A DNA stretch of 64,000 bases from Styela clava. Taxonomy: Eukaryota. The DNA lies in assembly GCF_964204865.1 (NCBI RefSeq), contig NC_135252.1, positions 10,416,001-10,480,000 of the forward strand, written 5' to 3'. The position numbers were made by a program, and so were the translations under genes. Under the pieces are notes generated by a model. It was not told the DNA's origin, made no database searches, and was given only the letters and a program-made list of their open reading frames with translations. Positions 23,787 to 47,805 of the stretch are shown piece by piece; position 1 is the stretch's first letter; every line of letters starts with the position of its first letter.

Positions 23787-26700
23787 TCACAATTTCGATT
23801 TATTTGCTTCGTCTCGCATCAAACGTCGAAGTATTTTTCCGCTTGCACTTTTCATAATTTTATCACAAAATTCTATTCCTCCATGTAGATGCTTGTATTT
23901 TGAAAGTTGACCTTCAAACACAATGCAAATTTTGGAAAACTGGAATAGCGTACTTTAACTATGGTTGACCTCTTTAAACTAAAAAAAATCATCAATGAAA
24001 ATGCATTACCAAAATCCCAAAATATTACAGATCGCAGCGATCTATACAGATCGCTGGATTTATAATGGGAGCTGATCAACACAAAATCGAACTAGATGTA
24101 TTTGCTGTTGTGCGTGTTACATTTATATTAACTCCTGCTTCCTAGCGAAATCGATATACCTACTCAAGTGTGCAAATCTTTCAAAGGAATTTTCGACAAC
24201 CTCATAGCGCGTCGTGTGTGGCTATTTTCATTTATATATGTATATATATATATATATTATGCTTTCCTTTATCGCGTAATAATATTATTCAAATTACCTG
24301 CGATATGGTTATGAATCTCCTCTTTTGTTAAACTTGGATCGTTTGGGACAACAAATGCTTTTGCAACTTCTCCTGCTTCTAGATCGGAAACTCCAATTAC
24401 TGCTACATCAGCAATTTTAGGATGGGAAATTAAAACTTCTTCCAGTTCAGCCGGGGCAACCTTGTAATGTTAAATCATAATAAAAAACTGAAAAAAAAAA
24501 GCATTTAAGATACAAAGGTTTGTTATTATTTGACGTACAGTCTTGTTACTGGCATTAGCAGCGTGTTGAATCAAGATTTTTTGTCTGCATTGATCTGCGC
24601 TTGACTATAATCAACTATATTTACTGGCAAGTTGCACGTAACTCGCACAACATATCACTCTAAAAACATTACCTGAAATCCTTTGTATTTTATTAATTCT
24701 TTTAATCGGTCAATAACATAAATCATCTCATTGTTGTCAAAATATCCAATATCACCAGTATGAAGCCATCCTTCTGCATCTATCGTGTTTGCTGTTGCTG
24801 ATGAGTTCTTGAAATAGCCTTTCATTACCTGCAAAAACGATGAAGTAAATGAGAGTTTATGTTTTCTATTATTCAGGTTCATTTATATTATGAACGGAAT
24901 GAAGTTTTGAATATAGACATAGAGAGTGAGTGAGGGATATACCAACTATGGCTATGGATTGGATTCAAAAGAAATACGAGCATATACATAATAATACCTT
25001 TTATTTGACATGCCTTTGAAGTTTCAGAACTCACCCATACCTGTGGACCTTTCACACACAATTCTCCATTCTGATATGGCCCTACTTCCGCGCCAGTTTC
25101 AATGTTGATTATCTACAAATAACAAAAACGAAGTCTTCAAAAACAAATAAAGACCTCAGAGTATTTATTTTTCATTGCAGTATTTTTAATGAAAATGTGC
25201 ACTCTTTTGGTACATATAAATTCTGCCGTACCCAGCGTCACTGACTTTTAATGCAATGGAATAGAGTAACTTTGGTAGATCTGTATGTACCAAAATTTAG
25301 TCAATTGCCGAAATTTATAGTTACCTTAATCTTTGTGTTAGCACAAACACGACCAACGGAGTTATGCGGGGTCATCTGAAAATCAGACGCTACAACAGGA
25401 ACGCACTCTGTCAGTGCCCAACCTAAAAACATCAAGCCCAAAGTTGAAAGGGTTCGATTACTGAAAATTAGTATAAAAAATAATAAAGGAAAATATCATT
25501 AAAATCAATAAGCACTCCACGGCAATTCGTGTTGGTATATTTTCAGCACTTGGAAAGAAAAACAAGAAATTCGTTATTGTACCAATTAATTATAAAAGCC
25601 ATATTAAACAGTAAAGCTGTCGTTTACATGATTCGCCAGTTTTTGTGCCTTTGAAATGAATATTTACCAATTTATAAAGACATCCTAAATGCTCGTTTCT
25701 TCGTTAAAAGGAAAGAATATTTAACGAATGTTAGAACTGATTGATCACCTTGTGCAACTTGGCATTTCAGCTTTGTAGACAAAATTGATGCAACTTCACG
25801 TGGTAGAGGAGCAGCTCCACATTTCAATGATAACAAAGATGAAAGGTCGTACTTTTCCAGCAAAGGGGACTTGGCGAACATCAGAAGCATTGGAGGAACG
25901 CCCGAAAATTGTGTTATCTGCAAAATATTGTTATATAATCAATAAATCTGATATTTAAAATAATACAATCTTGATTTTGTAATACCTTGTATTTTTCAAT
26001 AGATTGGAAACACCTTTCTACATTAAATCTGACATCAAGAACGTGTCGTACGCCCTGGTCCAACGTCGCAAAAGATACCATCAATCCGTAAATATGAAAC
26101 ATGGGAAGAACAGAATATACACTGTCAGGTTTGAATCCCATATTCATTCTAAAATATACAGGCAAGATTGGAGCAAGCAACTGGGTTAAATGTAGCAATG
26201 CATTATGACGTCATTTGTTGCGTTTTACAAGTCTACATTACTTAGAGCTTACTTATGAATTGACAGACACGACACAAAATTATAGTGAGTCAGCATTACA
26301 CCCTTTGGCATTCCGGTTGTTCCACTCGAGTATGGAAGAAACAAGACATCTTCACGTGGATCGATTTGAACATTCCTTGGAAAGGCTGTAATGGAGCAAT
26401 TTCAACGCATAAATTAGATTAAATCTGGATTTTTAAAGTTCTTTGTTATATATACTCAATCCATTCAAGGTCAGTGATCCCAAATTTATTCAATTAACGA
26501 AACAGCAAATATTGTCAAAAGTCTTCGTGAATCTACAAAGTAAGATCGGAAATGATGAATTCGGTAGTTATTTAAATTGGGTAATTTAATTAAAAAATAG
26601 GTTGTTTCTGTTTCTAGTAGATTAAAATTGGATATAAAATTTTTTAAATCCAGATGCACGAGCATGCAACGTTCTTGCCTACTTTGAATCAAATCCATAT

Positions 26701-28195
26701 CTATGTCTATTTCGAACGTTCGATATCGTTGATTTAAAACCAACAACCAATTTCCTGGGGAATCGCACGTTTAATAGTCGCTATTCAACTTAATTAAAAA
26801 ATATTTCATTTGAACTTTTAAATAAAGTTACCGCTTCCATCTTCATCTCTTATAAGATCATCAAAACTCTCAACTCCTGCTATCTTTCCAATAGTGTATA
26901 TTTTCTAGGAAAAAGCGCATCTGATTCTGTTTTATTAGAGGCAAATAAAAAATGACTCGGTGGCTATTGGCTCGATTGAGGCGACCCAATTTAATATGAA
27001 GTACAACATAGAGAAAACTAATTCTAAAACTTTTCTCTGTTCATTAGTATATATATATATATATACATGATTTACACCCTATATATTCTATTCATACCTG
27101 CAAAGAAGAAACAATCTCCGCCACATTTTTCACCTTTTCATAAGATGCAGGAACAGCGAATGCCATCGTTGGCTCAGAATGTTGAAATTGCCTTTTCATT
27201 TCATCTGTAATCAAAAATACCAAACATTTTGGCTAAGTAAAATATTTTTTCGTGTTATTTATTAATATCACAATATCAACTGATAGTAAACTAGGTGCAA
27301 TCTCTTTTTCTAGATCAGAATTAAGTTCGTAAGTCACCTCCAGCACTAATTTAATATGAACCTATAAAAAAACTTCCCAAGATGGATGGATATGTAACAC
27401 TACAAAAGTGCGTGTTGAAGGCGTGTGATATTGCTTGGTTTTTAATTTGTTGAAGTATTCAAATTAACGTTCATAGCGCTTTAGTCTATTGGTAAGAAAT
27501 AAAAATAATTTTACTTTGTGTATACAATGGGTTAGACGTAGTTATTGTTGCTCCACAAGCGGCAACAGCTAACATAACAATGATGTATTCTGGACTGTTT
27601 GAAGCACAAGTCGCTACAATATCACCCTTCTTCAATCCTCGCCTTGATAATGCACTTGCACATTTTATGGTGATATTTGCAACGTCGCCAAATGTTATTT
27701 CCCGCCCCGTTGGAGCATGTATCTGTAAACCACATTAATATATATTACCGTTTTGAAATGCAAATGTTATTAATAAGACCAAACCGTTATTATCAACAAT
27801 ATTTAATTTATGTAATGTTTTCTTATATTCCTAATTGCTGCATTATACCCATACATTAACTCCTAAGTTTATTTGAACACATGAATTTATTTATTAAATG
27901 TAGAAGCGGACTCATTTAATTTCCGTATTCTCCTCAAAATTTCTAAATTGATTTGTAAAAAAGTTGCACGGATCGACTATTTAATTTTAAAAGTCAAATA
28001 TTTAAAAAATATCAGATTATCACACATTAAACAATATTTGAAAATTGTGGTTCGTAGTGTGAGAGCCAAAATTGAATTATGTTTACTCACAATGGCTGTT
28101 CTGTCGCAGCGACGACGATACAACGATTTTAAAATATAATCCGTCAAAGAAACTTCAGGAATCACAATTTCTGGATATCTGCTTACAAGTGGCAT
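23787..28195 (-). CDS. Luciferase/4-coumarate:CoA-ligase-like acyl-CoA synthetase (ANL superfamily), paralog A, peroxisomal (C-terminal SKL), 523 aa
   Basis: 12 exons: 28195-28091, 27722-27515, 27204-27098, 26904-26832, 26385-26253, 26148-25986, 25917-25749, 25422-25325, 25112-25041, 24828-24673, 24460-24298, 23911-23787 (1572 nt, all GT-AG). Motifs: [11 protein letters not shown] (P-loop), [68 protein letters not shown]; ends EANKSKL*. Confidence 0.95.
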
Positions 28196-30301: not shown

Positions 30302-33300
30302 TCATAATTTAGATTTTTTTGCTTCTTCTCGCAAAACGCGACGTAGAATCTTCCCTGTTGCACTTTTCGCAATGTAATCACGAAATTCTATTCCGCCATA
30401 CAGATGTTTATATTTTGAAAGTTGGCCTTTGGAATAAAACAAAATGATTATTCATATGAAGATATGTGAAAAGCATGTATTTTAGTTTAGCAATTTTGTG
30501 AATAAAGCATTACAAGCTCCAATTAGACATTAGTATTGGTCGCTACTGTTTCGATATTGGCTGGCAACAGCGAAGATAATGTTATCCTATAAGCTTTGTT
30601 ACATTGGATCTTACACAATTCATCTTTTCTTTTTGCATGTTTTTACTTTTGTTTATTTCTAACGACCCAAATAAAGTTACACTTATAACTTTGTTCGTCC
30701 AAAACTGTATAGTGTGGAAATATAGACGTACATTGTATTATTGAATATATTGTAGTAAATATTATTCTATCTCTTCACCTGCGATAAACTTGTGGATCTC
30801 GTCCTTTGTTAAACTCGGATCTTTTGGAACAACATATGCTTTTGCAAGTTCTCCTGCTTGGAAATCTGGAATTCCAACAACTGCTGCATCAGCAATTTTA
30901 GGATGAGCAACTAGAACTTCCTCTAATTCAGCTGGGGCCACCTTTTAATGTATAGATAAAACGTGTAAAATAAAAATAAAAATACACACAATCCAATCTA
31001 ATATCACTACACGTAAGTTGCGCCTATTTACTATCAAAGTGAACAAATTACCTGGAATCCTTTATATTTTATCAACTCTTTCAGTCGATCAATAATAAAA
31101 ATCATTTCATTGTCGTCATAATATCCAATATCTCCAGTGTGAAGCCATCCGTCTGAATCGATTGTCCTTGTAGTTGCAGTTGGGTTTTTGAAATAACCTT
31201 TCATTATCTACAATATGTTGTAAGCGCATTAAAAATAATGTCGAAAGAAAAAAAAATGCTTAATTTGGATGTTTTTGAGCATGACTAGTAGAAAAGAAAT
31301 TATTTTTCATACCTGAGGACCTTTAACACACAATTCTCCGTTTTTATATGCTCCTAGTTCCGCACCAGTTTCAATATCAATCACCTGAGGATAGAAACAA
31401 AAAAGGTTCCAACGAAGCTAAAAAGTTGTGGTCCTTGCCTATAGAAATCCCACGAATTATATAGGTCAACTGTTATAAATTTGAATGCTGTGGTTCACGG
31501 ACGGGACTTGGTATTCTCAAATATTTGTGCATTGACTCTGATATTATTGTATTAAAAAAATTCAACACACAAATAATCGAAACGAAAAATAAAATACTGG
31601 GGAAACGTATAATTTGCAAGAAAAAATATCTCTCCTGCTACATCGTAGTAGATTAATTATAAATCGGTGTATTAAGTCACATCAACTTATTTATGCAACA
31701 ACGAGAAAGCTTCTTTACTATGAATCTCCTTAATCCTTTCTAATACACTATTGACCTCCTACAGTTTGACTGTTATAGCGATAAGTAATCATGAGTGATG
31801 AAATATCCACTTGTCTTATAGCTTAACATCCATCTTATTATTGGTGTTATGAAACACGTGCTTTTTATCAGAACGTGCAAACTGAAACGTTGCTGCTTTT
31901 CGACGGCGGTATTCCGATACGAATAGTAATATTTTTTTTGTTCTTTCATACTATTGATTATGCTTACGCTTCTTGATTATCACTTTCGTTTCTTTTGGCT
32001 CTTGGTAATTCTATATTTACTAAAGTATGTTGAAGAAATTTACCTTAATTTTTGTGTTTGCACATACACTGCCAACAGAGTTATATGGGGTTATTTGCAA
32101 ATTCGCCATTGTAATAGGAACACACTCAGTCAATCCCCAGCCTGTCAAGTGTATATATAAGTTTAGTCAAATATCATCAAAGATTAAAATATAGGCCCAC
32201 TGAGACGCAAGTAATATATTTATATTATTTGTTCTTCCATTTGGTATAATATCCTAAGCAAGGGCGGTAAAATATCAGTTTAAATATTTAAATAAATTGT
32301 ATTGTTTGCATCAGCCGTAGTGTTAAAAAATATACATCATTGTGTTGGATATAGCACAGCATAAACAATAAGCGTTACCTTGTGAAACCGGGCAATTTAG
32401 CTTTGAAGCCAATATTGATGCGACTTCTCGGGGTAAAGGCGCAGCCCCGCTTGATATTGTTAACAGAGAAGAAAGATCGTATTTTTCTAACAAAGGAGAT
32501 TTTGCAATTGCAAGTAGCATTGGAGGAACGCTGGAGAATCGTGTCACCTGCAAAAATAATGAGTTTTATTCCTATCCTATAGATACTTTACTTCTATAGA
32601 TGAATATTTGACACATTGCAGAACAAACCGACGTTTAAGCAAACACCGCAGGTGATGAAAAAAGTTACTTTTCACTTATTTAAAAGCTATACCTTATGTT
32701 TAAATTGGTTGGTTGGTTGTTTGCATTGTTGTTGCAGGTCAAAATCGCCAGGGCTTTTGATTTTTTAAATTAAAAGGGAAATTTACCCAAGAACAATATG
32801 TTCCCATATGCACTCTGATCCCCAAGGCTCATCTTTTTACCCCAAATTCTGCATTTAGAAGCAATTTCACCCCACACAAATTTATCACTTGTGTCCATAT
32901 ACATCTGTGAGTTGTTTAATTATTATATCTGTTACTATAATTCTGGCTCACACAAATCAAATTTGTCTCAGTTTGAAAAATGAATTTGAAAATAAATATA
33001 CTTATATCCGTAAATATATCATTATATTATTTAATCCTCTGACCACAAAAAATTAGCATATTATGCCATCGAATTTGGACTAGGAGATTTTATTTTCTTA
33101 CACTAATGAATTACCTTGTATTTCTCAATACACTGGAACCAATTTTCTAGATTGAATCTGACATCGAGAACATGTTTTAATCCTTGATCCAAAGCAACGA
33201 AAGCTACCAACAATCCATAAATATGAAACAATGGGAGAACAGAATATATACTGTCGGAATTAAATCCTGGATTTATCCTAGAACATAAAAAGATTGTGAA

Positions 33301-36300
33301 TATTTTGACAACATGTTAAATGCATTTGTTTTTTATATTTGCTCGTTACTGGCTGAAATTTATTAACGGTAATCAATAGTATGGTAAATTAACACAACAC
33401 ATGAAATCATTACAACCGGATAAAAACGAAGTTAGTTATAAATATACAATGAGAATATGACAAAATTGAAGAAACGTTAGCAAAAAAAACCGTCTTGATA
33501 ACAAAGTTTTGAATTAATCCATCCATTCGATTTAATGATGTAAAAATTTGCCTTGTCGATAAGATTAAATAAAAATACGTGAGTCGTAACGTGCTAATTC
33601 GTAATATGGTTGTATGATTATATCCTTACTTGCACATTGTTATGCATGATATAAAGTTGTGATGAGTCAACATCACACCTTTTGGTAACCCAGTTGTTCC
33701 GCTTGAATATGGAAGAAACAAAATATCTTCACATGGATCTATTTGAACATTCCTTGGAAAAGCTGAAACGAAACAATTCAGAAAAGTAAATAAGAAAGCA
33801 AAGCTAAAATTGCAATAAAGAAGGATATAAATGCTTACTAAATTTTAATAGCTATTTATTCATACCAGTTCAAATTATCTTACATTTATGTCTCACTCAC
33901 GGAAAACTGCAGAAAATTGTACTTACTCTCCTGCATAATATGCCATATTTCAATGTAACTTCTAGACCAGGGGTTCCCAAGCTTTTTTTAGAACGACCCC
34001 AAAGACAACTTTCAAGTGTCCAGTGCGACCCCAGGTCAATATATATATTTTCAATAATGAAACTTCTGAAGCTTCCTTCACTGGACTTTTGAGTTTGGTC
34101 ATGTGGTGATATTAAGTAAAATAAGCTGAAACCAAACAGTGATGTCGCAATAAGCACCTACATTTTCTATAGCATCAGCATAGAGCAATGCCTATGAGCC
34201 TGTTTTACAGTACGCCATGGTACAAGCTGCTAAATTTAACATGATTTATCAAATCTTAGATGTTTTGTACATTCATCCTCCACCATACCTCAGCGACCCC
34301 ACCGACCCCATGACCTGTTTGCGACCCCACCTACTTATCACTCCGACCCAATTTGGGGTCGCGACCCCTGGTTTGGGAACCTCTGTTTTAGACCTTGTAA
34401 GATTTCGACGTATTGCAAACACTTAGTTAACATTAAAGAACACAAGCGAATTTGTGACTTACCACTTCCATTATCATTACTTATGAGATCATCAAAACTC
34501 TCAACTCCGGCAATCTTTCCAATGGTGTAAATTTTCTATACGAAAATACAGTTAATTTTTTTAAGTAAACCGCTTGAATGGAAGCATTTTTATTAAGCAC
34601 TTTTTTATGCACTTTAAAAACATTTGACAATGAGTGGAGATTTTAAAAATTAGATTTTATTCTTTTTGATATTTCATTTATTGTGATGTCAAGATCATCT
34701 TTTGGTGCTCGTGTAGTATGTGAACCAACATGACGGACACCAGAACGTAGTATGTGTATCAGGTTAGCGTTAGGCCATAATTTAAGGTACAAATACTACG
34801 GGAGTCACTGGGATAGTCCCCGAACTCGTAATAAAACCAAAATAGGGAAAATTAGGATAAAATTATGTCCTAACATGGTACACATACTACGTTCGTACGG
34901 TGTCCGCCATCTTGGTGCACATACAACGGGAGCGCTCGCCTTCGTTATTGATGTAATAATATAACCGAGAACCCGAAACGAGTGTGGATTATGTATCACT
35001 GTAGAGTGTAGAGCTTGGTTCTACTGGTCACCATAGTGGGTCAGGTGACTACGCCTAATGGTATGAATCTAGTCTATACCATAACTATGTTCAATTTCTG
35101 TATTGTAATTATTACCTCCAATGACGGTACAACCGCCGCGACATTTTTCACACTTTCATATGCCCCGGGAATAACAAATGCCATTTTTGGCTCAGAATGC
35201 TGAAACTGATGTTTTATTTCATCTGTAAGCAAAAATATTAAAAAAAAAAACATAACAACGAGTGAATTTAGCGGAAGCGCAATATCACTAATGTAGTCTT
35301 AGTTAACAGTGATGAAGGCGCCTACTGGTGCCATTTTTTTCTGAGTTCTAACATTATGAGTTGGTGCTAAGATGTTAGTTATTTGTAAAACTATTGTTAC
35401 TTCAGGTTCATCCTGATTTCATATACAAAATATTTGTCACGGAAAATTTATCAATCTTACGTTCTGTATACATTGGATTGCACGTAGTGATTGTTGCACC
35501 ACACGCAGCGGCAGCTAAAAGAACAATGACGTATTCCGGACTGTTGGAAGCGCATGTTGCTACAATATCACCCTTTTTCAATCCACGTCTAGCTAATGCA
35601 CTTGCACATTTTACAGTCGTATTTGCAATTTCTCCAAAGGTGATTTCACGGGCAGTGGGTGCATCAACCTGTCAAAATATATAAACAAAATTCTTGCACA
35701 TTTTCGATTAATATATTGATCATATCCTAATACTTAGTCAAGTAGATAAAATGATGGAAGCGGTGTTTGTATGTTTAACCAATGCGAAGTAAGGTCTAGA
35801 ATTTCTTCTGTAATCCCATATTTAGAACGTACATTAACCAATAAATAAGACATACGTTTCATACTAATTCCCGTTTTCTTAGTAATCTCCTTTATTTTTC
35901 TATAAATTTCACAATGAATCGTGAGTCGAGTGAAACTTTTTTGAACTTTCGGACTCTCCCTCGAATTGAGTCACCAAACATTTAAAAAAAGATTAGATCA
36001 CCATTTAAACAGAATATTGACATCAATTTTTTACTAGTTTTGGGCATATGTCTTAAACAACAAAATCGAATCGGGGCTGAGCGTCTCTGTTTGAGCCACA
36101 TTTTCTTTGCCCAACGCACTCTGGTATAAATGTGAACACAAATACACAGCATTTCTGTAACCTTATAATATACTGTAAGGTTGAATAAAAGTTATACATA
36201 TATATACTCACGATAGCTATTCTGTTGTAATGTTGATAAAGCGATTTGAAGATGTAATCCGTTAGAGAAACTTGAGGAATCACAACTTCAGGAAATCTGC

Positions 36301-36313
36301 TTATGAGCGGCAT
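30302..36313 (-). CDS. Luciferase/4-coumarate:CoA-ligase-like acyl-CoA synthetase, paralog B, peroxisomal (C-terminal SKL), 522 aa
   Basis: 12 exons: 36313-36212, 35668-35461, 35222-35116, 34535-34463, 33762-33630, 33277-33115, 32547-32379, 32141-32044, 31384-31313, 31207-31052, 30941-30779, 30426-30302. Exon sizes 2-12 are identical to A. Motifs: [65 protein letters not shown]; ends EAKKSKL*. Confidence 0.95.
33968..34385. mobile_element. hAT (Charlie/Buster-type) MITE in intron 4 of paralog B
   Basis: TIRs CAGGGGTTCCCAA / TTGGGAACCTCTG; 8-bp TSD ttctagac / ttttagac; subterminal gcgacccc repeats. Confidence 0.85.
34704..34936. mobile_element. Palindromic MITE with long TIRs (copy 1) in intron 3 of paralog B
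   Basis: ~80-bp imperfect inverted arms (gtagtatgtgaaccaacatgacggacacc.. / ..ggtgtccgccatcttggtgcacatac); a second copy in opposite orientation lies at 41506-41741. Confidence 0.8.
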
Positions 36314-37027
36314 TTTGGTATCAAGACTTCGTTTCTATCGCCTTGAAAATTGAATTAGGAAATTAGCTTGTTGTTTGAACTAATAACAGCTGTTTAAAGC
36401 ACTTGTGTGACACGAAAATGTTCCTTCCGTATGTAATTCTTAAATATTTTTGACTATGTCTGTTATTGACGCATGCTCGAAACTTGAATCTGACTTTGAG
36501 ATATTGTATGTGATCACGAGTAACGTAAAATACGTTACACAAGATGTAATATTCTTCCGATATAATTATGTAAATCTAACTACACTCTCTGCCTTTCAAA
36601 TCTGAATGCGCACTGCAATTTCGTGAACCAGGTATATATAAAGTGAATGTTGATAATGGATGACTTCATTACAATACATACATCACAGATAGAACGTCAA
36701 AATCCCGCTGCTATGAATGGATATCTAGAATAACCATGGCGATGTCTTGAGGTATAATATACGTATAAGTCCGCTCATGAATCCTGTTTAACTCTCAATT
36801 CTGACTCAAAACGTTATAGGTTAAGAGCCAATTGTCCCGCATTGCAAAATGACTGTGCGTGTCATATTAAACTATTGATTAGAACTTATCATGATGCACT
36901 TTACCTACCGACGCAGCTAAACTATAAGGTTCTGGAATGTAAATACAACCTGAAATAACCGCACAGTCGCTACACGGATGGCAGGAGTATGTTCGATAAA
37001 CCGTTAACGGCTTTCATAGGCAAATAA

Positions 37028-37043
37028 ATTAATCATTGACTTA
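37028..37043. promoter_or_regulatory. Conserved upstream element (HNF1-like site) in the divergent B/C intergenic region
   Basis: 16/16 identity to 29144-29159, in the same orientation relative to the paralog's ATG. Confidence 0.4.
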
Positions 37044-38278
37044 TTGGTATGTAAAATGACCAAAGGCCCATCATAAGCTGTATTGATCCCATATCAACTT
37101 CACACATATGCCATGGATGGCCGCCTAGGGCCCTAGAAGCAAGTCATCGCTGAAAGCTTCTTTTTGCACAAACCAATCTCATTAACCTGCATACAAGAAT
37201 ATTCAATCCAGTCAGCAAATGTTGGCTAATTATAGGTATTCGTAGATAAAGTAAATGCAAGTGCATGCCGTTAACGTATGTATCAGAGCACGAAATTATA
37301 ATTTTGAACTGAGTGGGTGTATGATTGTTTATGTATCTTTCAATGTTTCCGTATGACAAGCATGAAATACAATACGCATGAATGGAACGCAGTCGAAGAA
37401 TAAATACTAAATACGCAGTTTTTTCTTGCTGCCATGATCGCGTTTCCTTTCCATTGACGCATCCTGGTAACAGTCTATCTAAAACTACATAAGGTAATAA
37501 AAAGCTTTGGATAATAGAGTGAATGTATATATAATGTCTTCTGCCTTGAGAAGTATGAAAAATCAAAAGTAATAAGGTGTATATAAACTTAAAAGATAGT
37601 AGTTTACACACACAGACAAGAAAATGAATTTTTAGTCGCTTACAAAGATTTCAAAATTGTTAAAATATTGCATACGCAAGAATCAATAATATATTCCAAT
37701 AAAAGTACTTAGGCTCCAAAATAGGCTCCAAAAGTTCATTTTGATTTATTTCATTTTAATGAGCACATATTTCTGCAATGCAAATAGGTAAATCAGAGAC
37801 AAATTTTCGCCTGTTTTGCCATGTAAGTCGGGTCGAGATATATAGCAGCTATGAAGCTAAATACCATTCAAAAATTCCGGCAATGTACATATTTACAATG
37901 AGCTATCAAAGGTTTACCAACAGTTAATGCAGTTTGATACTGATGTCAGATGCAATTCAACAATTCGTTAATAATTTACCCGGCATACACTACTGAATAT
38001 GATCAGTAAAATGAGGAACATCTATATAGAACTGAGAGAACGAGACTTAATATTTGCTACGGCTAGCACCGACCAATGCTAGATTAGGTCCACTGTCAAC
38101 CTGCCATGTTTGTCTAGAGTTTATACGATCTGAGCTACCAGAAGCTTCATTTTGAATTACTAAACTATCTTAATAAAACTGAATATTAAAACTAGCAGTG
38201 TAGCTGGTTTTCTGAAATAATTATAAACAGGAATAGTCTGATTCTATGTGGAAAAGAAAGAAGAGTGTTGAAAGCACG

Positions 38279-41200
38279 ATGCCGATAGAAAGTCGATATT
38301 CCGAAGTCGTAATTCCCGATATTTCTTTTTCTGATTACATTTTCAAATCTTTGCGTCGCTATGGAAATAGAGTCGCAATTGTAAGTAATATTCAGAGATA
38401 TATTTGGATAAGTAGAACTTCAATGCACCTACGAATTCGAGCAAGATTTAAATTGATAGCGTCCAATTTCATTTGCCGTTTCTTGATTGCCGAGATTCGT
38501 CGAAATAGCGAGTTGAGAGTCAATTTTTCTTCACTTAGGTATAGTGCTGACTGCTGACATTGTTCACTTCTAACTATAAGCGGTTCTGAGGTGACAGTGG
38601 TGAATGCTAGCTACTCACACATTCGGATCTACTATAATTATTAACGTCAATTTTCTCTCTTATTCCCATAAAATGTATTAGGCCACCAGTGTGGTATTTC
38701 AAAATAAAGCGTAACAATACTTTTTTGTAGATCGAGGCGGGCACAGGACGAAAACTAACATTTAAAGACATTGAAATCGAAGTGTTGAAGTGTGCAAGTG
38801 CGTTGTATAAGCATGGAGTAAGGAAAGGTGATATGGTGGCAACTTCGGCCTGGAACAGTCCGGAATATATCATCGTAATTTTGGCAGCTGCGGCTTGTGG
38901 CGCCACAATTACCACTTGCAATCCATTTTACACTGAAGGTAAACATGAGTTGAATCCAAAAATAATAAAGTAAAGTTATAGAATTTTTCACGTAAATAGC
39001 TTCGGCTGGCCGGACAGTGGCCCGCGGGCCGTATGTTGCATCCCTCTGCTGTAAAAAAATGATAATAAAGATAAGAGTATTACATATATTCAAATTCGAT
39101 TTTTCCCCAAATCTAATTATCACTAAGTTGTATTTTCAAGTAAGATATAATCAAAATATTCATTTATCAATAAAATATATTTTAATGAAATTAAATCATA
39201 TTTTTAGATGAATTACGACATCAGTTGAGTGATTCTCAGCCTAAACTAGTCTTCACTGTAACAAGTTCGTACCAAAAAGTTAAAAACATTTCCTCGACGA
39301 TATCATCAATTCAGGTAGTGTTCGACCGAATGATGCCATGAAGGTCAGATCTTTCATGGCTAATATAGCGTTGACGAAGTGATTGCTTCCTGATTGTTTT
39401 GCATGTTCGTCGTCATTCAAGGTCAAACACGTTAGCAATTTCAATAACGCTTTTGGCAAGAAATTATGAAACTCAGTCTTCTTTTAAATTGTTGAGTTTT
39501 CCTGAGATATCATCCTTGTTTTGCTTTATCTATGACCATACAACTTACTTTACGAATCCTAAAAGGCTCTTTTCACAATGAAAATTACGTTTAATGAGAA
39601 TATTTTGAACTCTTCCTCTTGCAGAAAATATGCAACTTGGGCAAACTCGATGGGGCAGAAACTTATGAAGATCTTGTCAAGAATGAAGATGGAAAAGGTA
39701 AATTGCTACATTCCTTTGTAACACAATCACAATAATTCAGTTAGTGGTAATCTTCCTTACATCAATCTTATATTTATTCAAATTGTTATTTTTATTCCAA
39801 GCTGAAATATGCAAATGTGACAAATACATTAACATGATTTTTCCTAACTCCGAGTTGATGTTGAAATTTATTTATTTGAAGTCGTTTGAAAACCCAAAAA
39901 GTATATTTTATTGTAACATATCATAAAATAGTAATATCCTATTACAATTAGAGCGCTTTCCTTTTCTAAAGCTAAGATAATAATGAACTACAAACTGACT
40001 CCCATCATGTGAAACCGCAAGCAAAAGATCCAATTTTAAACTTCGACACATACTAAAATATGGATATTTGAAAAAAATTGTAAGGCTTCTTCCAAGTTTC
40101 TGAAACAAAATTACAAAATTATTTTCGAAAGATTCATTAAAATTAAATAATATTTTTTTTTTCAACAGATTTTCCAACTGACATCCAGATCGATCCGCGA
40201 GAAGATATATTGTTTTTGCCATACTCTAGTGGCACAACTGGGTTACCAAAAGGAGTTATGTTGACCCATCGAAATTTCGTTTCCAGCCTTGTCATCTTTA
40301 AGTAAGATATATTTCTTCTATATTTTAAAAACATTTTCACATTATCACAACATTATCCGCTCAACCATATTGCAACAATTCGGGAATAATCGAATCTACA
40401 TCTGTGATGATTTATCAGACCCATTTGTATGAAAATTGATATAAAAGTGAAAGGCTGCACAACTTCATACAAAAAGACAATGTCATACAAAAATTATTAA
40501 TTACTAAAAATAAATGAAGAATATTCATTCATCCACGGTATTCATTCGTTAATCATCTCTATAACAGGGTTAAAACAGGACTTAGTCTGGATTGCATCTA
40601 TACCGTTTTACCAATATTTCACATGACTGGATTGCTGATAACATTTAAAGCCTTAGATCAGGGCCAAAAGCATCTGCTGGACGTTCGATTTGATGTTGAA
40701 AAATTCTTGGCTAATATAGAAAAATACAAGGTAATCTAAAATATATGATGCCTTTATATTATATTTGTGCAGATAACTGTTGATCAGTCAGCATCATATG
40801 TTTTGATAAACAAATATTTGAGTGCCTGATAAAACCATATGTCTTCAACTGAATTTAATTATTTTCTTTTTTAAATTTTGAATGTGCATTTGAAAGGCTA
40901 ATCAAAATGGGTACGGTCTGGCTTCCTCTAATGAACACCAACACTTGTACCATTCGTATACCGACCCTGAATGTGTTTGAATGACTAGATCAGTGGTTCT
41001 CAATCTTTTTTCTTTTGTGGCCCATTTTTGTAGCCCAACAATTATTGTGGCCCATCAACCTTTTATTGTAAGGGGAAAATTACAAGAAAAATCAAGATCT
41101 TTCTGCAAAAATGAACACTCGAAACGTTTATAAATAAACTGGGAATTACCTCTCAGTAGCAGAAAACAGCGTCGTTGATTGCTGCTACAATCTATTGTGA

Positions 41201-44200
41201 CATAAATAAAACTAGCAATTTTTAATAGTTCTGTGGCCCACCTCAAAATATTACTGTGGCCCAGCAATGGGCCATGGCCCACTGGTTGAGAACCAGTGGA
41301 CTAGATTAATTAATTTTATGTTACAGGTAACATCGTTTATGAGCGTTCCTCCTATGCTCATGAAGATAGTGAAATCTTCTCTCATAAGCAAATATGATTT
41401 GTCATCTTTGCGAAACGTTGGTTGTGGTGCTGCTCCATTGCCAATGGACGTGGGCGAATCGGCTAAGAAAAAATTGAACTGCAATCTTAGCCAGGGTAAA
41501 TATATGGTATTTCTGTAGTATGTGAACCAAGATGGCGGACACGGGAATGTAGTATGTGTACCAGGTTAGGGTTAGGACATAATTTTATTCCAATTTTTCT
41601 TATTTTAGTTCTATTGCGAGTTTGGGGAGTAACCAAGAGACTCTCGTACTATTTGTACCTGAAATTATGGCCTAACCCTAACCTGCTACACATACTACAA
41701 TCCGGTGTCCGCCATCTTGGTTCACATACTTCGGGAGTACCAAATATATACCTTCATAAAGCTGATGAAAGCTTTACGAGATCAATAGAATAAGTATATT
41801 TAACAATATCAAAGTGGATGTAATTGTTTTTTGATTATTTATTGTAAATAATGTTTGGTAAAGAATGTGACATTTGCTCTGTAAGTCAATCATCACATGC
41901 AACTAAAAGTATGAGAGTGAGCTCGCACTTGACATAGGTTCTGAACTACGGGTTAATTTATTGTACCTTATGCTGAAGCAGTTGGGACAAAAACTTTCTC
42001 TTTGTTCAGTGTGCAATCACTTTATCTTTTACGTATTGTCATCAAATTATTACTAGTCTCTTTTTTGTTGCTGTTGTTAATTTTGCTAATTTGAAAACGT
42101 TTGCTATACCAAGTTACAATTTAGCTTTGGTTTTCATATATTAGAGGATTGTTTCATTATTTGTTTTCATATTCCGCACACTTTCTTTTTAAATATGAAG
42201 TTGGAATTGTTTGAATGACAACTCAACAAAACGGAGGATTAGCGATAATATATTGAATGCTAATATATATATTCTGAAGTTTCCATTGTGTTTAATATTT
42301 TACTTTCGACTGCAATGAGTATTATGCGCATACCAACTTGATCTTTCATAACAGGTTGGGGTCTGACGGAGGCTGTACCAGTTGTGATGACTCATGCATC
42401 TTATAGCCCGGTGAATTCAGTTGGAATCGTGTGTGCTAACACGCAACTCAAAGTATATTATTTATTGGTTGTTGTTGTTATTTCTTGGATAAATATCACT
42501 TTTATCATTTGTCGATAGATCGATTGTTTTCACATCCTACCTTTAAAATTCATCTACAATTTTATTGTTCTTTTCGATGAACTTTTTTTGGGCTCTTCGA
42601 TGACTTTATCTTCAATTTAGTTTTTCAAATTGCTTCAAGAAGGGCGTATCGTGGTGTGTGTACATTGGAAACAAAAAGTGGTCATGTGACTAATTATATA
42701 AAGTTTTTACCACACTTCACTATAATATTAATAAATAAATGGACTTTCACTACGTGAATGAGGTAATCAATTCTAGGATTAGAACAAATTGATAAATTCA
42801 AATCTTAAATTATTGCCTTTTATCAAAGCTATGTTGCTCTTTCATGAAAAAAATAATTAAATAGCTTTTTTAAAACACTTTGTTGTGTATGTTACGAGAT
42901 GGAATTTTTATTAAATCATATAAAACATCACTTACAGGTAATCGACGTTATTACTGGAAAAGAACTTGGACAAAATGAACATGGGGAACTGTGCGTGAAA
43001 GGGCCTCAGGTATGTCTAAAATCTGAGTCTATTCAGCGGCTATTTGCTCGAAAACTTGCATTAAAATTAGGAATGATGACATACACTTCATCTGTAATAA
43101 TTATGCATTTTTATTTTAACGTTTTCTTTGTACGATGAGTTTAATTCGGATTTAATTCTTTTTTTATTTGATTTTTTTCATTTCAGTATTTTATGGTATT
43201 GACGTTGACGACGTGGACAGTAATTATTGTACTATTAATACCATTGTAAAGTTTAAAAAACATTTTTCTGAGATAATTTTTGGAATTTTCGTATGTTTAC
43301 AAACAATTTGTTTGGCAATTGCAGTTTATTGTTACTGAAACCATTTAAATATCAGTAACATTAGCGCACAAAGTGCCTCATACATAGTTATATTGATCAA
43401 ATTACCAAAATTGTCATTACCTAGAAATAATAACATTGTATTGTTACATCTCAACTTATTAAAACGAATTTTGCAATTTGATTTATATCAATTATCCGTA
43501 CTTATGAGACGACTGTAAGCAAACTATTATATTAACCATTCACATGTCAAAATAGTGACATCTTTACCGACTTTTTGAATACTGACTTTTTGTCTATAAT
43601 AAGCAGGGCCGGATCATGTCTTTTAGAGGCCCTGAGCACTTGAGACTTTAGTGCCCTATAAATAAAAATAAGCAAACATTTTTATCATCCCGACAAATAT
43701 TGAAATTTGGATCGTCTGACCAACTCAGATAATTTTATTAAACACCGATGCACTATTGAAAATTCGTTTAAGAAAATTTCTATGGTAAACCCTCAAATTA
43801 ATTAGGATTGTGTAATTCTACAATTCGACGTTTAGGTCATGAAAGGATATTTCAAGAACCCATCATCAACTGCTGATACAATTGATGCGGATGGATGGCT
43901 TCATACTGGGGATGTCGGGTACTATGATGACAATGAATTGATTTATATTATTGATCGCATTAAAGAACTGATCAAATATAAAGGATTTCAGGTGAAACAT
44001 GTATATTATATATAACAGATAAAATATAATAAATTCAGCTTTCAATTTATAAAAATCGGGCATCTAAAAGCCATTCGTCAACTGAAATTCTTTTACAAAA
44101 AATTTGTTTTCAAACTGACATTGTTGGCAAAAAATGTAAATTTCATTTTGTATACAGGTTGCCCCTGCTGAATTAGAAGCGACACTAGTTGCCCATCCTA

Positions 44201-44739
44201 AAATTTTCGAAGCAGTCGTTATTGGAGTTCCGGACCAAGAGGCAGGAGAACTTGCAAAAGCATTTGTTGTTCCAAAAGATCCGAGTTTAACAAAAGAGGA
44301 GATCCACGAATATGTAGCTGGTGAGAGCCTTTGCGATTCCGCATTTTTGCTCTTTACATTTGTGATTTAAATTTGATTACTATATATTACGGCAACCATG
44401 CTATAGATTGGCAATGATAGTAATTCAGATTTGAAAAGTATCTTTTCGCCAACAATTCTTCACAAAACAATACTAGTATCTATTCTAGAGTAATCGAGTT
44501 TGTAACAAATATCAGACATTTGAGCATTAAATGGGAACTTTTTTTATTCGCAGTTCTTTAACTTTTTTCGTCTATCGTGGACGGTAATAAAAATGATTTT
44601 TTATTTACGTATTTTTAAAGGTAAATTGACAAAGTACAAGCACCTGCATGGTGGCATTGAATTTCGTGACAACATTGAAAAAACTCCCAGTGGGAAACTA
44701 TTGAGACGAAAACTACGTCAGAGCATTGCCAAAAACTGA
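38279..44739 (+). CDS. Luciferase/4-coumarate:CoA-ligase-like acyl-CoA synthetase, paralog C, lacking canonical PTS1, 520 aa
   Basis: 12 exons: 38279-38380, 38731-38938, 39208-39314, 39625-39697, 40169-40301, 40568-40730, 41327-41495, 42355-42452, 42938-43009, 43836-43991, 44158-44320, 44621-44739. Motifs: [65 protein letters not shown]; ends SIAKN* followed by in-frame TTA TAG. An upstream in-frame ATG lies at 38246. Confidence 0.95.
40991..41298. mobile_element. hAT (Charlie-type) MITE in intron 6 of paralog C
   Basis: TIRs CAGTGGTTCTCAA / TTGAGAACCAGTG; perfect TSD gactagat (40983-40990, 41299-41306); gtggccc repeats; a related copy lies at 62803-63116. Confidence 0.88.
41506..41741. mobile_element. 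Palindromic MITE with long TIRs (copy 2) in intron 7 of paralog C
   Basis: Arms gtagtatgtgaaccaagatggcggacac..ggttagggttagg / cctaaccctaacc..gtgtccgccatcttggttcacatac; the internal segment is the reverse complement of the 34704-34936 copy. Confidence 0.82.
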
Positions 44740-47480
44740 TTATAGCAAGCTTCATGGGGTGAAAAGTATTATTTATAAATTCTCAGAAAAAAATGAGGCA
44801 ATCCGTTATATCAAACTGCATTCTTTTATCATGCAATAACTAAATGTAGGGAGAAATACCTTTTAATTAATCCGAAATCCATTTAATCTCTTTATGATTG
44901 AAATCCTTAGCGCATCAGTTTATTATGGTTTGTCGAATGGAATAAATTTATGTCGATCAGTTCGTCAGTTTGAATACAATTCTAAAGCTCATGTAAATTT
45001 GTTAGTAGAAATGCAAAAGAAAAAAAAGAATATGTTTTGGACACAGAGATAAGTATGTTCAAAAATAAAATATAAATTTGATTACAGTATTTAGTAGAAT
45101 AGAGAGGCAACAGACAGCAAAAGTTTAAAAGTAGTGGCTTTGAAAATAAGTTCCCGCGAAATCCTCTTATTTTCTTGTGGGTTAATAAATTTGAATTCAG
45201 TTCGATAATTCTATCCTGCGCCATTTTCTTTTGATTTCTTTCTATATTGAAGTTAGACTATCATTAAATTTCTATGCCACATCACTGGTCGCATTTATAA
45301 TATAAAAGTGATAATGCATAGAATTTCATAAGTTCTCATTTTCATAAAATATGTTTTACAATTTGTTACTTTCCGCCTAATTATGATTATTGTTTGAAAA
45401 AATTTATGAAAATTTAATAATTTTTAAATAAAAATGGCATGATTCACAAAAATCTGATATTTTTAGTAGAGGAAACTTTTGAAGAAATTGAAGATTAGTG
45501 AAGTACTATTTAGTGCACAAGTTGACGTTCATGTAACAATTGTCGTTTTGCGCGGTTTCGTTACTATCATAAAGTAATATTCAGTTCACGAAAAGCGAAA
45601 GAGAATACAGTATAAAGAAGAAATCTTAAAATCCATCATTTTCCCAAAATTTTGACAAAAATTTCTTTTCGAAGATTTTCAGTAGTTAAATATGGAAGTA
45701 TCCCTTAAAAAGGAATTGTTTTTACAGTTTACATTTTTTCGCATGGATAGTCTTGGCCCCACATTTTTTACACAGAGTGTTGCTGTTTGCTAAAAAGCTA
45801 CGATTGGAGTAATTTTATTGAGAAAACCATGGGAAAAATTATTTCGTGATCTTCACAGAAAGTTGTGTCTAAAAATAAACTCAAATCTTTTGAAAACGTA
45901 GATGAGATGTATCTGTTGAATACAGTAAAGAATGTACATGACGTTGTAACAATGACAAGCAGATTATAAACAATTTAGTTGGGTTTTCGATGTGTAACAG
46001 TGATATATATTAAATAGACCACTTGGCATTATTCGATGACGATGTTTCGTTTTATACCTCTGTGAGGTTTTTCTTGACGCATTTGTTAGAGATGATGAAC
46101 CACAATGAGCTATTTGTGTATTATTCTGTTTTCACATGACACGTTTTGTCTGACTTTTACCTTTACTAAATAATAATTTCGCCATTTTGACGAAAACGTT
46201 TGAACTGCGGCAAAATAAACGATCATGGATATGGTTATAATTGAAAGTACATTTGACGCTGAAAATGAATAGCCTATACGGATAATTAATAGTATTAGAG
46301 TCTATATGACGTTAAAAGTTGGCCTTATTGTGTAATTAGTATTTTGACCAATTAAAAGTGGCAATAAACATTTTCGTTTTTTTTCATTTATCCGTCACTT
46401 GTACGAGTTGAAACACTTACAAAATTTTAATGACTTATAATTTCAACCTCAAAACGGTTATTGTTGGGAGATTATTAACAGATTCTTTCTCGTAATAATC
46501 AACAAAGGTTATTTTCGAAATGTCTATAAGAACCAGGCTCTTGAAATGAATTAATATTTCAAAGTACAGACAAAAATTATTACGAGGCTTTAATTAAAAT
46601 TTCTCTCATTTTAGAAATTCAGTGACTCATCTATAATGGGCAATTACAACGCTTTACGGACAATTTAAAACTTCTTTATATCGATTAAGAGATTATAGTT
46701 ATTCACAACGATGTGATGAAATCTATCAACGTTTCTGCAATTTCAAAGAAATTTTAACCAGTACTCTTTGGTACGTCGCAATTTGTGGTACCATTCATGT
46801 GAGCCAATTGTCACAGTTCTGCCGAATTTTAGTTAACTTGCCCATATTTATATCTGAATTATAGACATTTAGTTTTAGAGGTCAATATGGTTGTGTAACA
46901 GGCAGCATAAAATTTGAAGTAGAAAAGTTTATATTCAAATCAAAGATCTGAACAAGTCAAATTCTTTGTGTGAGCCAATTTAATTTTAATTTAATTCAGA
47001 TTAGGAGTAACGACGTAGGAACAATTTTAAGATTAATGCGGATAAATGGCACTTTTGAATAGCATAAGCATCTTTGTTACGTTATAAAAGAAATGAAAAA
47101 TGACTATTTTTTGTCATTTTATAAGTGCTTACGATTGATCATTAATTTTTTATTTACAAACCAAAAGGTAATTTTATACATTGGATTGCATTTTGAAACA
47201 GTGGTATTATAGATAAGCATAGTATACAATAGAATGTTGTAGTGTATCAGCATTATTCATACCTAACTTGGAATAAAACTAATATATATTTTTATATATT
47301 AATATTTTTTTAGTGTTAATAGTGTCTGTTGATTCGAACAAATCGATTTGTCTGAATATATGTTAGATGAGAGTGGGGTAAATGTACTCGCTTTATTGCA
47401 ATAAAGTATTTTTTATTCAATTTCTGCTTAATCTATATCAATTTTTCAAATAATATAGTGGATTTTAATGATGTGATATA

Positions 47481-47805
47481 CAAGTGATATAGCCAATTTT
47501 TTTTATGTTGAATTATATTTTCTCTTCAACATTGTGACACTGTATGTGTACACGACATTAAAAGTGTAGGTTTACGTTCAGTGTGCGATAAAATACGGGG
47601 AAAGCAAAAATTTTGTTTTGCCTTTTTTTATATAAGTCAACAAGCGATATAGCAAAGTCTTTTTGTGTTGAATGATATTTTCTCTTTAACATTGTGACAT
47701 TGTATGTGTAAACGACATTAAAAATATATGTTTACGTTCAGAGCATGTTCACGTTCAGCGTACGCTAAAGTGCGGAGAAAACAAAATTTTTGTTTTGACT
47801 TTTTT
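47481..47805. repeat. Diverged tandem duplication, two ~160-bp units
   Basis: caagtgatatagc..ttctcttcaacattgtgacactgtatgtgtacacgacattaaaa..tttacgttcag..ttttgttttg repeats from 47641 as caagcgatatagc..ttctctttaacattgtgacattgtatgtgtaaacgacattaaaa.. Confidence 0.85.

Follow-up and report, generated by a model that had tools for sequence, protein, structure and literature searches.

A TGA stop codon within the C-terminal import tripeptide of one of three neighboring luciferase/4CL-like acyl-CoA synthetase paralogs of Styela clava probably records a loss of peroxisomal targeting

Paralog C, a luciferase/4CL-like acyl-CoA synthetase gene of Styela clava, ended at a TGA codon located exactly where its neighbors A and B had the Lys codon of the import tripeptide SKL (PTS1), and a Leu codon and a second stop followed in register with theirs. 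Paralog C probably lost its PTS1 through a nonsense change that occurred long after the paralogs split, and would now be the cytosolic neighbor of two peroxisomal enzymes. Judged from its terminal residues, the C protein (ending in SIAKN) is most likely cytosolic.

The window, that is the whole stretch of 64,000 nucleotides analyzed, was searched by tblastn with the Ciona protein P0042 and the S. clava protein P0161. Paralog A (23787..28195, minus strand) was recovered as 12 exon-sized matches, and paralog B (30302..36313, minus strand) also as exon-sized matches. Paralog C (38279..44745, plus strand) had about 12 coding exons, and its reading frame was open in each exon-sized match. Paralogs B and C were placed head to head, with about 1.97 kb between their starts. 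Exon 10 of C (VMKGYF...KYKGFQ; 43834..43991, plus strand) was delimited by its tblastn match, with ends approximate within 3 nt; the spliced contig of X5 joined a piece at 43834-43988 to 44155, a common CAG resulting in a 3-nt ambiguity of the cut. The penultimate exon 11 (44158..44320, plus strand), which encoded the AMP-binding_C domain, corresponded to a contig piece at 44155-44319 and was followed by GT at 44321-44322. The last exon (44621..44745, plus strand; 125 nt up to TAG) was preceded by AG at 44619-44620 and was included in the X5 contig piece at 44620-45138, in which the actual exon extended beyond 44745 into the 3' UTR. Beyond TAG, the 3' UTR (44746..45365, plus strand) reached at least 45138 and probably about 45365 (X5 contigs 44620-45138 and 45110-45365), and contained the hexamers AATAAA at 44941, 45064 and 45184, and ATTAAA at 45263. 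The X5 spliced contig (1,041 nt) joined exons 10, 11 and 12 with about 390 nt of UTR; C was transcribed and spliced.

Paralog C is a member of the ANL superfamily, a luciferase/4CL-like acyl-CoA synthetase whose gene is intact and expressed. Exon 2 matched the Pfam domain AMP-binding (PF00501, E 4.2e-12), exon 11 matched AMP-binding_C (PF13193, E 1.3e-12), and exon 10 matched PDB chains of luciferases and 4CL (5e-22 to 1e-16). All ANL core motifs were present in C in the exon-by-exon tblastn against P0042 (SSGTTGxPKG, GWGLTE, TGD, YKGxQVxPxELE and the C-terminal GK); the intact motifs comprised 30 protein letters not shown here plus PSGKLLRR. The sequence IEKTPSGK replaced in C the IPKSASGK of its relatives.

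The last exons of A (23911-23787, minus strand) and B (30426-30302, minus strand) were 125 nt long and encoded PTS1 ends, N-K-S-K-L-TGA in A (AAT AAA TCG AAA TTG TGA) and K-K-S-K-L-TGA in B (AAA AAA TCT AAA TTA TGA), and codon alignment bore out the length and the K-S-K-L-TGA end that the first-pass annotation had given for both. The end of the last exon of B was also the end of the database protein P0161. The tail codons of C were GCC AAA AAC TGA TTA TAG (A-K-N-stop-L-stop). In the codon alignment, AAC (Asn; 44734..44736, plus strand) occupied the Ser (-3) slot of SKL, and TGA, the working stop of C (44737..44739, plus strand), occupied the Lys (-2) slot. These were followed by a relic Leu codon, TTA (44740-44742), and a relic stop, TAG (44743-44745), in register with A and B (44740..44745 together, plus strand). 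The distance from GK(I/L)LRR to the final stop was 11 codons in A, B and C alike, and this common spacing placed the TGA of C precisely at the Lys of SKL. The first-pass placement of TAG at exactly nt 125 of C, with TGA in the K slot, was codon-exact. The SKL-type tripeptide at the translated end that characterizes the PACS type was present in A and B (S-K-L), and C ended in A-K-N.

Stop-Leu-stop occurred at 60 of the 7,949 stop triplets on both strands of the whole window (0.75%), and TGA followed by a Leu codon and a stop occurred, with the same scope, at 15 of 2,685 (0.56%). Since stop-Leu-stop was rare in the window, TTA and TAG are most readily understood as remnants of a tail of the SKL type. 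A second stop-Leu-stop among the 29 paralog tails of this genome was found in L010 (TAA TTG TAA), out of register with SKL.

Relatives from other tunicates (Ciona, Phallusia and Clavelina) ended in KSKL (P0042, P0159 and P0160) or KAKL (P0157), and because of these SKL- and AKL-like tails the PTS1 is taken as ancestral. Paralog C would thus derive from an SKL-tailed peroxisomal ancestor in which the basic -2 codon became TGA and the -3 residue became Asn. The old Leu codon TTA and the old stop TAG would now be the six bases that open the 3' UTR, still undecayed, which would be explained if the nonsense change came long after C separated from A and B. Third-base identity of the last exon of C was 0.39 to A and 0.37 to B, and the 60 nt past the stops were 23-25% identical between paralogs, as for random sequence. 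With neutral sites near saturation and post-stop bases random, the relic would survive only if the duplication had preceded the nonsense change by a wide margin. Conversion of the middle codon of the PTS1 to a stop, with a move of the enzyme to the cytosol, as had been suggested in the first-pass annotation, agreed with all the evidence; the ancestral codon may have been CGA or AGA, as suggested with it, or AAA by way of a TAA intermediate. Two peroxisomal enzymes (A and B) and one non-peroxisomal enzyme (C) at the locus would amount to subfunctionalization by location. When the tails of the 29 paralogs were scored by eye against the PTS1 pattern list of Stiebler et al., a PTS1 match was present in 3 of 29 (A, B and L006, which ended in SHL) and absent in 26 of 29. 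Absence of a PTS1 was therefore the rule among the luciferase/4CL-like paralogs of this genome, and a loss in C would be an ordinary event in the family.

An old loss of the PTS1 combined with a chance look-alike, in which the tail was remodeled at an early date and an AT-rich 3' UTR supplied the Leu codon and TAG by coincidence, is unlikely, although it stands ahead of the other alternatives. Most residues in the tail of C differed from their counterparts in A and B (QSIAKN vs. EEAKKS and DEANKS), and the near saturation of third bases in its last exon and the presence of stop-Leu-stop in L010 also agree with an old loss. Protein P0162 shares the derived IEKTPSGK with C and is also devoid of a PTS1, which could reflect an old shared loss. 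Against this, just 0.56-0.75% of stops were followed by a Leu codon and a stop, and the relic stop of C coincided with nucleotide 125, where the last exons of A and B end.

For comparison of the stop, P0162 (Logan-derived) was the sole related protein found from another species; it had sense codons at that position and ended in AAM, which is not a PTS1. Its assignment as the C orthologue from IEKTPSGK was withdrawn, since overall identities and quartet counts favored no single placement, with 3, 3 and 1 informative sites for the three quartet groupings. A HMMER search of the whole library with exon 11 of C resulted in 2,859 matches at E ≤ 0.001, the nearest being P0018 (72% identity over the matched stretch), and none of them lay nearer to C than to its two neighbors. 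With P0042 as the query, P0161 (S. clava, identical to B) and P0162 were retrieved, and neither an annotated protein of C itself nor a protein from a congener was among the best 120 of 8,000 scored. A metagenome scan with exon 11 resulted in at least 595 pattern matches, at least 315 confirmed relatives and at least 80 loci kept; the best match among those listed had 65% identity over the full exon 11 and 73% over a 37-residue part, and none of these loci entered the comparison. Owing to the length limits applied, exon-sized protein searches contributed nothing: the reading frame over the last exon retrieved no candidate, and the open frame over exon 11 retrieved two distant fragments.

UGA is the leakiest stop codon and is followed in C by a pyrimidine, so some readthrough product of C must exist. 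A one-codon switch, as proposed in the first-pass annotation, would go beyond this: UGA would be decoded by tRNA-Arg in some ribosomes to give an end in AKNRL, a weak PTS1 recognized by Pex5, and the mainly cytosolic enzyme would be accompanied by a small peroxisomal pool, with the Leu codon and the second stop under selection. This is improbable, and somewhat more so than an old loss. A Leu codon and a stop in register would seldom arise by chance and agree with a switch, as does the identity of the working stop, since Arg is among the residues inserted at UGA in the sections available of PMC5133446. Readthrough-made PTS1 isoforms are established for LDHB, MDH1 and fungi in the literature as available, and in some mammals AGT naturally ends in NRL (PMC12960970, available in part). 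Conversely, the context in C was UGA UUA UAG C, and the UGA CUA (G) context typical of readthrough genes was absent; changes at +4 to +6 reduced readthrough in LDHB and in U. maydis according to the published portions available. Incorporation at the stop was far below 0.1% for most genes (PMC5133446, same sections), and Trp as well as Arg was inserted at the UGA of MDH1, so that only part of the product would have a basic -2 residue. Stable RNA structure downstream of the stop of C was absent (z = 0.09), and P0162, with its sense codons, also argues against a switch.

The predicted readthrough end was N-(R/W/C)-L. The PTS1 patterns listed by Stiebler et al., in the form available, include NKL, which the first-pass annotation had named; NRL is missing from that list despite being a natural AGT tail. 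With its UGA UUA U context, its lack of downstream structure and an off-list NRL, the dual-localization switch received no positive support and is doubtful at best; it is correspondingly improbable that the stop at -2 works as a minimal recoding device, contributing the basic residue to an N-R-L PTS1. If the switch were true, it would be the shortest possible functional readthrough extension, and one base change (TGA to CGA or AGA) could return the whole pool to peroxisomes. A stop codon could then encode part of a targeting signal, and searches for hidden PTS1 would widen to one-residue extensions. The loss of the PTS1 remains the preferred reading, and meaningful readthrough of C is probably absent.

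It is very unlikely that TGA stems from an error of sequencing or assembly, or that the sequenced animal carries a private null-like allele at a site where the species usually has a sense codon. X9 did not extend as far as the stop, and because the raw DNA reads of X10 had zero depth at the last exon of C, a segregating sense allele may have escaped notice. Against this, record 13 of the contigs of X6, from a different study and sample, spanned 44715-44860 with TGA TTA TAG unaltered from the assembly. All differences of this contig were 44747 A>G, 44849 G>A and an insertion of TAATT after 44750, and X6 thus carried TGA on a second haplotype. Record 4 of X5, from a third study (44620-45138), shared the variants of X6, and its eight listed differences (of 10) were all 3' of TAG, with no listed change at the stop region; the listed coding differences of X5, at 43889 and 43922, were both synonymous third-base changes. 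A haplotig check found a single copy of the stretch in the assembly. An assembly error at TGA, which the first-pass annotation had named as a refutation, was ruled out by its presence on the independent haplotype of X6.

A reading of UGA as selenocysteine, the penultimate residue of an end in AKN-U-L, has a parallel in the C-terminus of thioredoxin reductase, where UGA also stands one codon ahead of a second stop, but it is effectively refuted: neither a SECIS element nor any credible Rfam match was present at 44600-47600 on either strand (E ≤ 10; one chance hit), the residue at UGA aligns with the Lys of SKL, and no selenoprotein is known in the luciferase/4CL-like enzyme family.

In fireflies, tandem clusters contain PTS1-bearing and PTS1-less members of the luciferase family, read as peroxisomal and non-peroxisomal, respectively (Fallon et al., 2018, PMC6191289, as far as the available text goes). 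The beetle PACS/ACS clusters described there and the present locus have in common the family of luciferase-like acyl-CoA synthetases and tandem paralogs with or without a C-terminal PTS1. They differ in that the present case is in a tunicate and the probable loss is legible at the codon level, with a stop inside the tripeptide and the old Leu and stop codons behind it, a layout absent from the available text on the beetles. C most likely represents the known PACS/ACS pattern, with no new mechanism.

LDHBx, MDH1x and fungal glycolytic enzymes (PMC4359377, PMC5133446 and PMC4207609, each available in part) resemble C as metabolic enzymes that have peroxisomal relatives and in which a UGA stop is followed by in-frame PTS1-like information. 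In those enzymes the context is UGA CUA (G), and the extension comprises several residues, includes the whole tripeptide and is conserved across species; in C, the context is UGA UUA U, the extension has one residue, and the stop itself would supply the basic residue. Yeast IDP2/IDP3 (Yanagida et al., 2015, PMC4526572, in the portion available) also have a cryptic signal right behind the stop of the cytosolic paralog, and there too a trace of the enzyme could reach the other location through errors of translation. However, in yeast the cryptic PTS1 in the 3' UTR precedes a gain and is reached by +1 frameshifting, whereas C has an apparent remnant of a loss that could be reached by readthrough only. 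No earlier case of a stop inside a PTS1 tripeptide was found in the literature search, in which sources were available in part; short extensions may be present among the candidates listed in Stiebler 2014 and Schueren 2014.

Paralog C is a useful teaching example, and a warning to annotation pipelines that infer location from paralogs. As most likely read, it is a codon-level snapshot of a duplicated peroxisomal enzyme turning cytosolic through one nonsense change in its import tripeptide.

The window carried three paralogs from the luciferase/4-coumarate-CoA-ligase-like family of acyl-CoA synthetases. A (~23787-28195) and B (~30302-36313) were on the minus strand, and C (38279-44745), oriented head to head with B, was on the plus strand. 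Pfam AMP-binding and AMP-binding_C were matched by single exons of C, its exon 10 (43834-43991) matched luciferase, 4CL and CG6178 chains of solved structures (E 5e-22 to 1e-16), and every exon-sized match of C to Ciona protein P0042 was open and kept the family motifs. Visual comparison found the last exon of B identical to the C-terminal end of P0161 (522 aa; "4-coumarate--CoA ligase 1-like", Styela clava). About 1.97 kb (36313-38279) separated the first coding exons of B and C, and this interval may hold a shared bidirectional promoter.

Counted to the final stop, the last exons of A, B and C had 125 nt each (44621-44745 in C). They ended AAT AAA TCG AAA TTG TGA in A, AAA AAA TCT AAA TTA TGA in B and GCC AAA AAC TGA TTA TAG in C, where TGA (44737-44739) occupied the Lys slot of SKL, the C-terminal peroxisome import tripeptide (PTS1), TTA that of Leu and TAG that of the stop. 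The first-pass annotation had described this tail exactly. Its second alternative, PTS1 loss by a nonsense change inside the tripeptide, with a relic Leu codon and stop and a cytosolic enzyme, is the most likely reading and probably the right one, given the exact register, the relics and the reality of the stop.

Exon 11 had at least 33 matches in the genome, and the last exon was readable at 29 of the 30 loci retrieved. Compared by eye with the printed PTS1 patterns of Stiebler et al., three of the 29 tails fitted (SKL in A and B, SHL at locus L006) and 26, including C, did not. Proteins of other tunicates mostly ended in PTS1 (KSKL in Ciona P0042 and Clavelina P0159 and P0160, KAKL in Phallusia P0157), and Clavelina P0158 ended NRN; since these relatives were mostly PTS1-tailed and most tails in this genome were not, PTS1 is the ancestral state and was lost many times. 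In fireflies, as far as the available text of PMC6191289 describes them, luciferase-like acyl-CoA synthetases form tandem clusters of PACS genes with PTS1 and ACS genes without it. Large tandem expansions of PTS1-less members were observed on C17 (12.58-12.80 Mb; L016, L017 and L018, with identical last-exon peptides and flanks), C9 (3.89-4.00 Mb) and C1 (10.70-10.75 Mb). Locus L021 had an in-frame TAA within its penultimate exon match and may be a pseudogene.

The 521-aa protein P0162, predicted from a Logan transcript contig, is not encoded in this genome, where its best exon identities were 59-80%. It shared with C the derived IEKTPSGK (44680-44703 in the last exon of C, just before the conserved C-terminal Lys; IPKSASGK in other tunicate relatives). 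The identities of P0162 to A, B and C were 65.1, 68.5 and 61.9% overall, and 72.3, 74.8 and 76.1% over reference positions 351-522. Quartet-informative sites numbered 3 for C with P0162, 3 for A and B with C and 1 for A and B with P0162 with other tunicates as outgroup, and 3, 6 and 8, respectively, with the S. clava paralog P0163. The tail of P0162, equal in length to that of C, ended TKAAM; each of the three slots held a sense codon, and PTS1 was absent. Its sequence shows only inconstant PTS1 retention in the subfamily, and this related protein of another species gave no support for conservation of TGA-TTA-TAG.

The third codon base of the last exon of C was shared with A at 0.39 and with B at 0.37 of codons (10/25 and 9/25 among identical residues), and the 60 nt behind the stops were 23-25% identical, which places neutral sites near saturation. 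An unselected Leu codon and stop dating from the duplication would thus have decayed, and the nonsense change would be much younger than the split, or both codons under selection, or the match fortuitous. An old PTS1 loss followed by a chance look-alike is unlikely: of the 7,949 stop triplets on both strands of the window, 60 (0.75%) were directly followed by a Leu codon and a stop, as were 15 (0.56%) of the 2,685 TGA triplets, and chance explains poorly so rare an arrangement that also falls at nucleotide 125. The tail of locus L010 (G000:C6:12924395-12927556), SHSLE-TAA-TTG-TAA, was a second stop-Leu-stop in the family, out of register with SKL. If AAA was ancestral, as in A and B, TGA takes two steps, with AGA or TAA as the intermediate. 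In the penultimate exon (44158-44322 against 24296-24460 and 30777-30941), the fraction of codons with a common third base was 0.65-0.67 between C and its two paralogs, little below the 0.71 between A and B; compared with the 0.37-0.39 of the last exon, this mosaic suggests paralog gene conversion ending short of the last exon.

A one-codon readthrough switch, the other alternative of the first-pass annotation, is improbable. In animals and fungi, high readthrough goes with the context UGA CUA (G) and is reduced when positions +4 to +6 are altered (PMC4207609, PMC4359377, PMC12233894, in the text available); the corresponding bases in C are UGA UUA U. Most genes show incorporation at their stop far below 0.1%, and the residues that the accessible part of PMC5133446 reports at UGA include Trp and Arg, both found in MDH1, and not Lys, so N-R-L would be only part of a small readthrough fraction. 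The printed list of Stiebler et al. gives [SATPCVNG]KL but only [ASTPCE]RL; of the NKL-type tripeptides proposed as PTS1 variants, the list thus covers NKL but not the readthrough product NRL. In favour of the switch, NRL is the natural AGT tail in some mammals (PMC12960970, available text), and weak function is possible. The 124 nt from UGA onward folded no better than shuffles (z = 0.09).

An artefact or rare allele at TGA is very improbable. Four sequencing runs were compared over 39800-45700; X5 and X6 reached the stop, coverage of X9 ended at 44617, and X10, raw Hi-C reads, had zero depth at the site. A 1,041-nt X5 contig held 43834-43988, 44155-44319 and 44620-45138 contiguously; two introns were absent, cut at GT-AG sites, and the run thus contains spliced C RNA, with a 3' UTR of at least ~390 nt. 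A second X5 contig joined 40568-40728 to 41325-41497. An X6 contig (44715-44860), from a different study and sample, differed only at 44747 (A>G), 44849 (G>A) and by TAATT inserted after 44750, which confirms TGA TTA TAG on a second haplotype and counters the assembly error considered earlier; the stretch is single-copy in the assembly. X5 carried the same three differences, of which 44747 A>G and TAATT form a haplotype marker right behind the relic stop (44747-44750). All eight differences listed, of ten in the last X5 piece, lay 3' of TAG, and the coding differences listed (43889, 43922) were synonymous. The nonsense change cannot be younger than the common ancestor of haplotypes that differ at ~2% of UTR positions (10 differences over 519 nt). 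A further X5 contig (40270-44242, depth 25.8) connected 40270 with 43878 and 43994 with 44242, in conflict with the exon model; it is probably the transcript of another paralog that passed the 85% threshold through conserved motifs, or else an aberrant isoform. Directly behind the exon 7 donor of C lay a fold-back element (41495-41752) with inverted 91-nt arms (41495-41585, 41662-41752; 89% complementary, 76 nt between), in very high copy in every run compared (summed depths of thousands to hundred thousands, many strand-switch joints).

Selenocysteine at the UGA is practically dismissed, since a search of 44600-47600 at E<=10 gave neither a SECIS nor a credible match to any other RNA family.

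Under the preferred reading, a nonsense change within the tripeptide, which occurred long after the paralogs split, would have removed PTS1 and left the C enzyme in the cytosol, and the old Leu codon and stop would survive behind TGA as relics. PTS1 loss in C is an ordinary kind of event for this enzyme family, unusually clear here.
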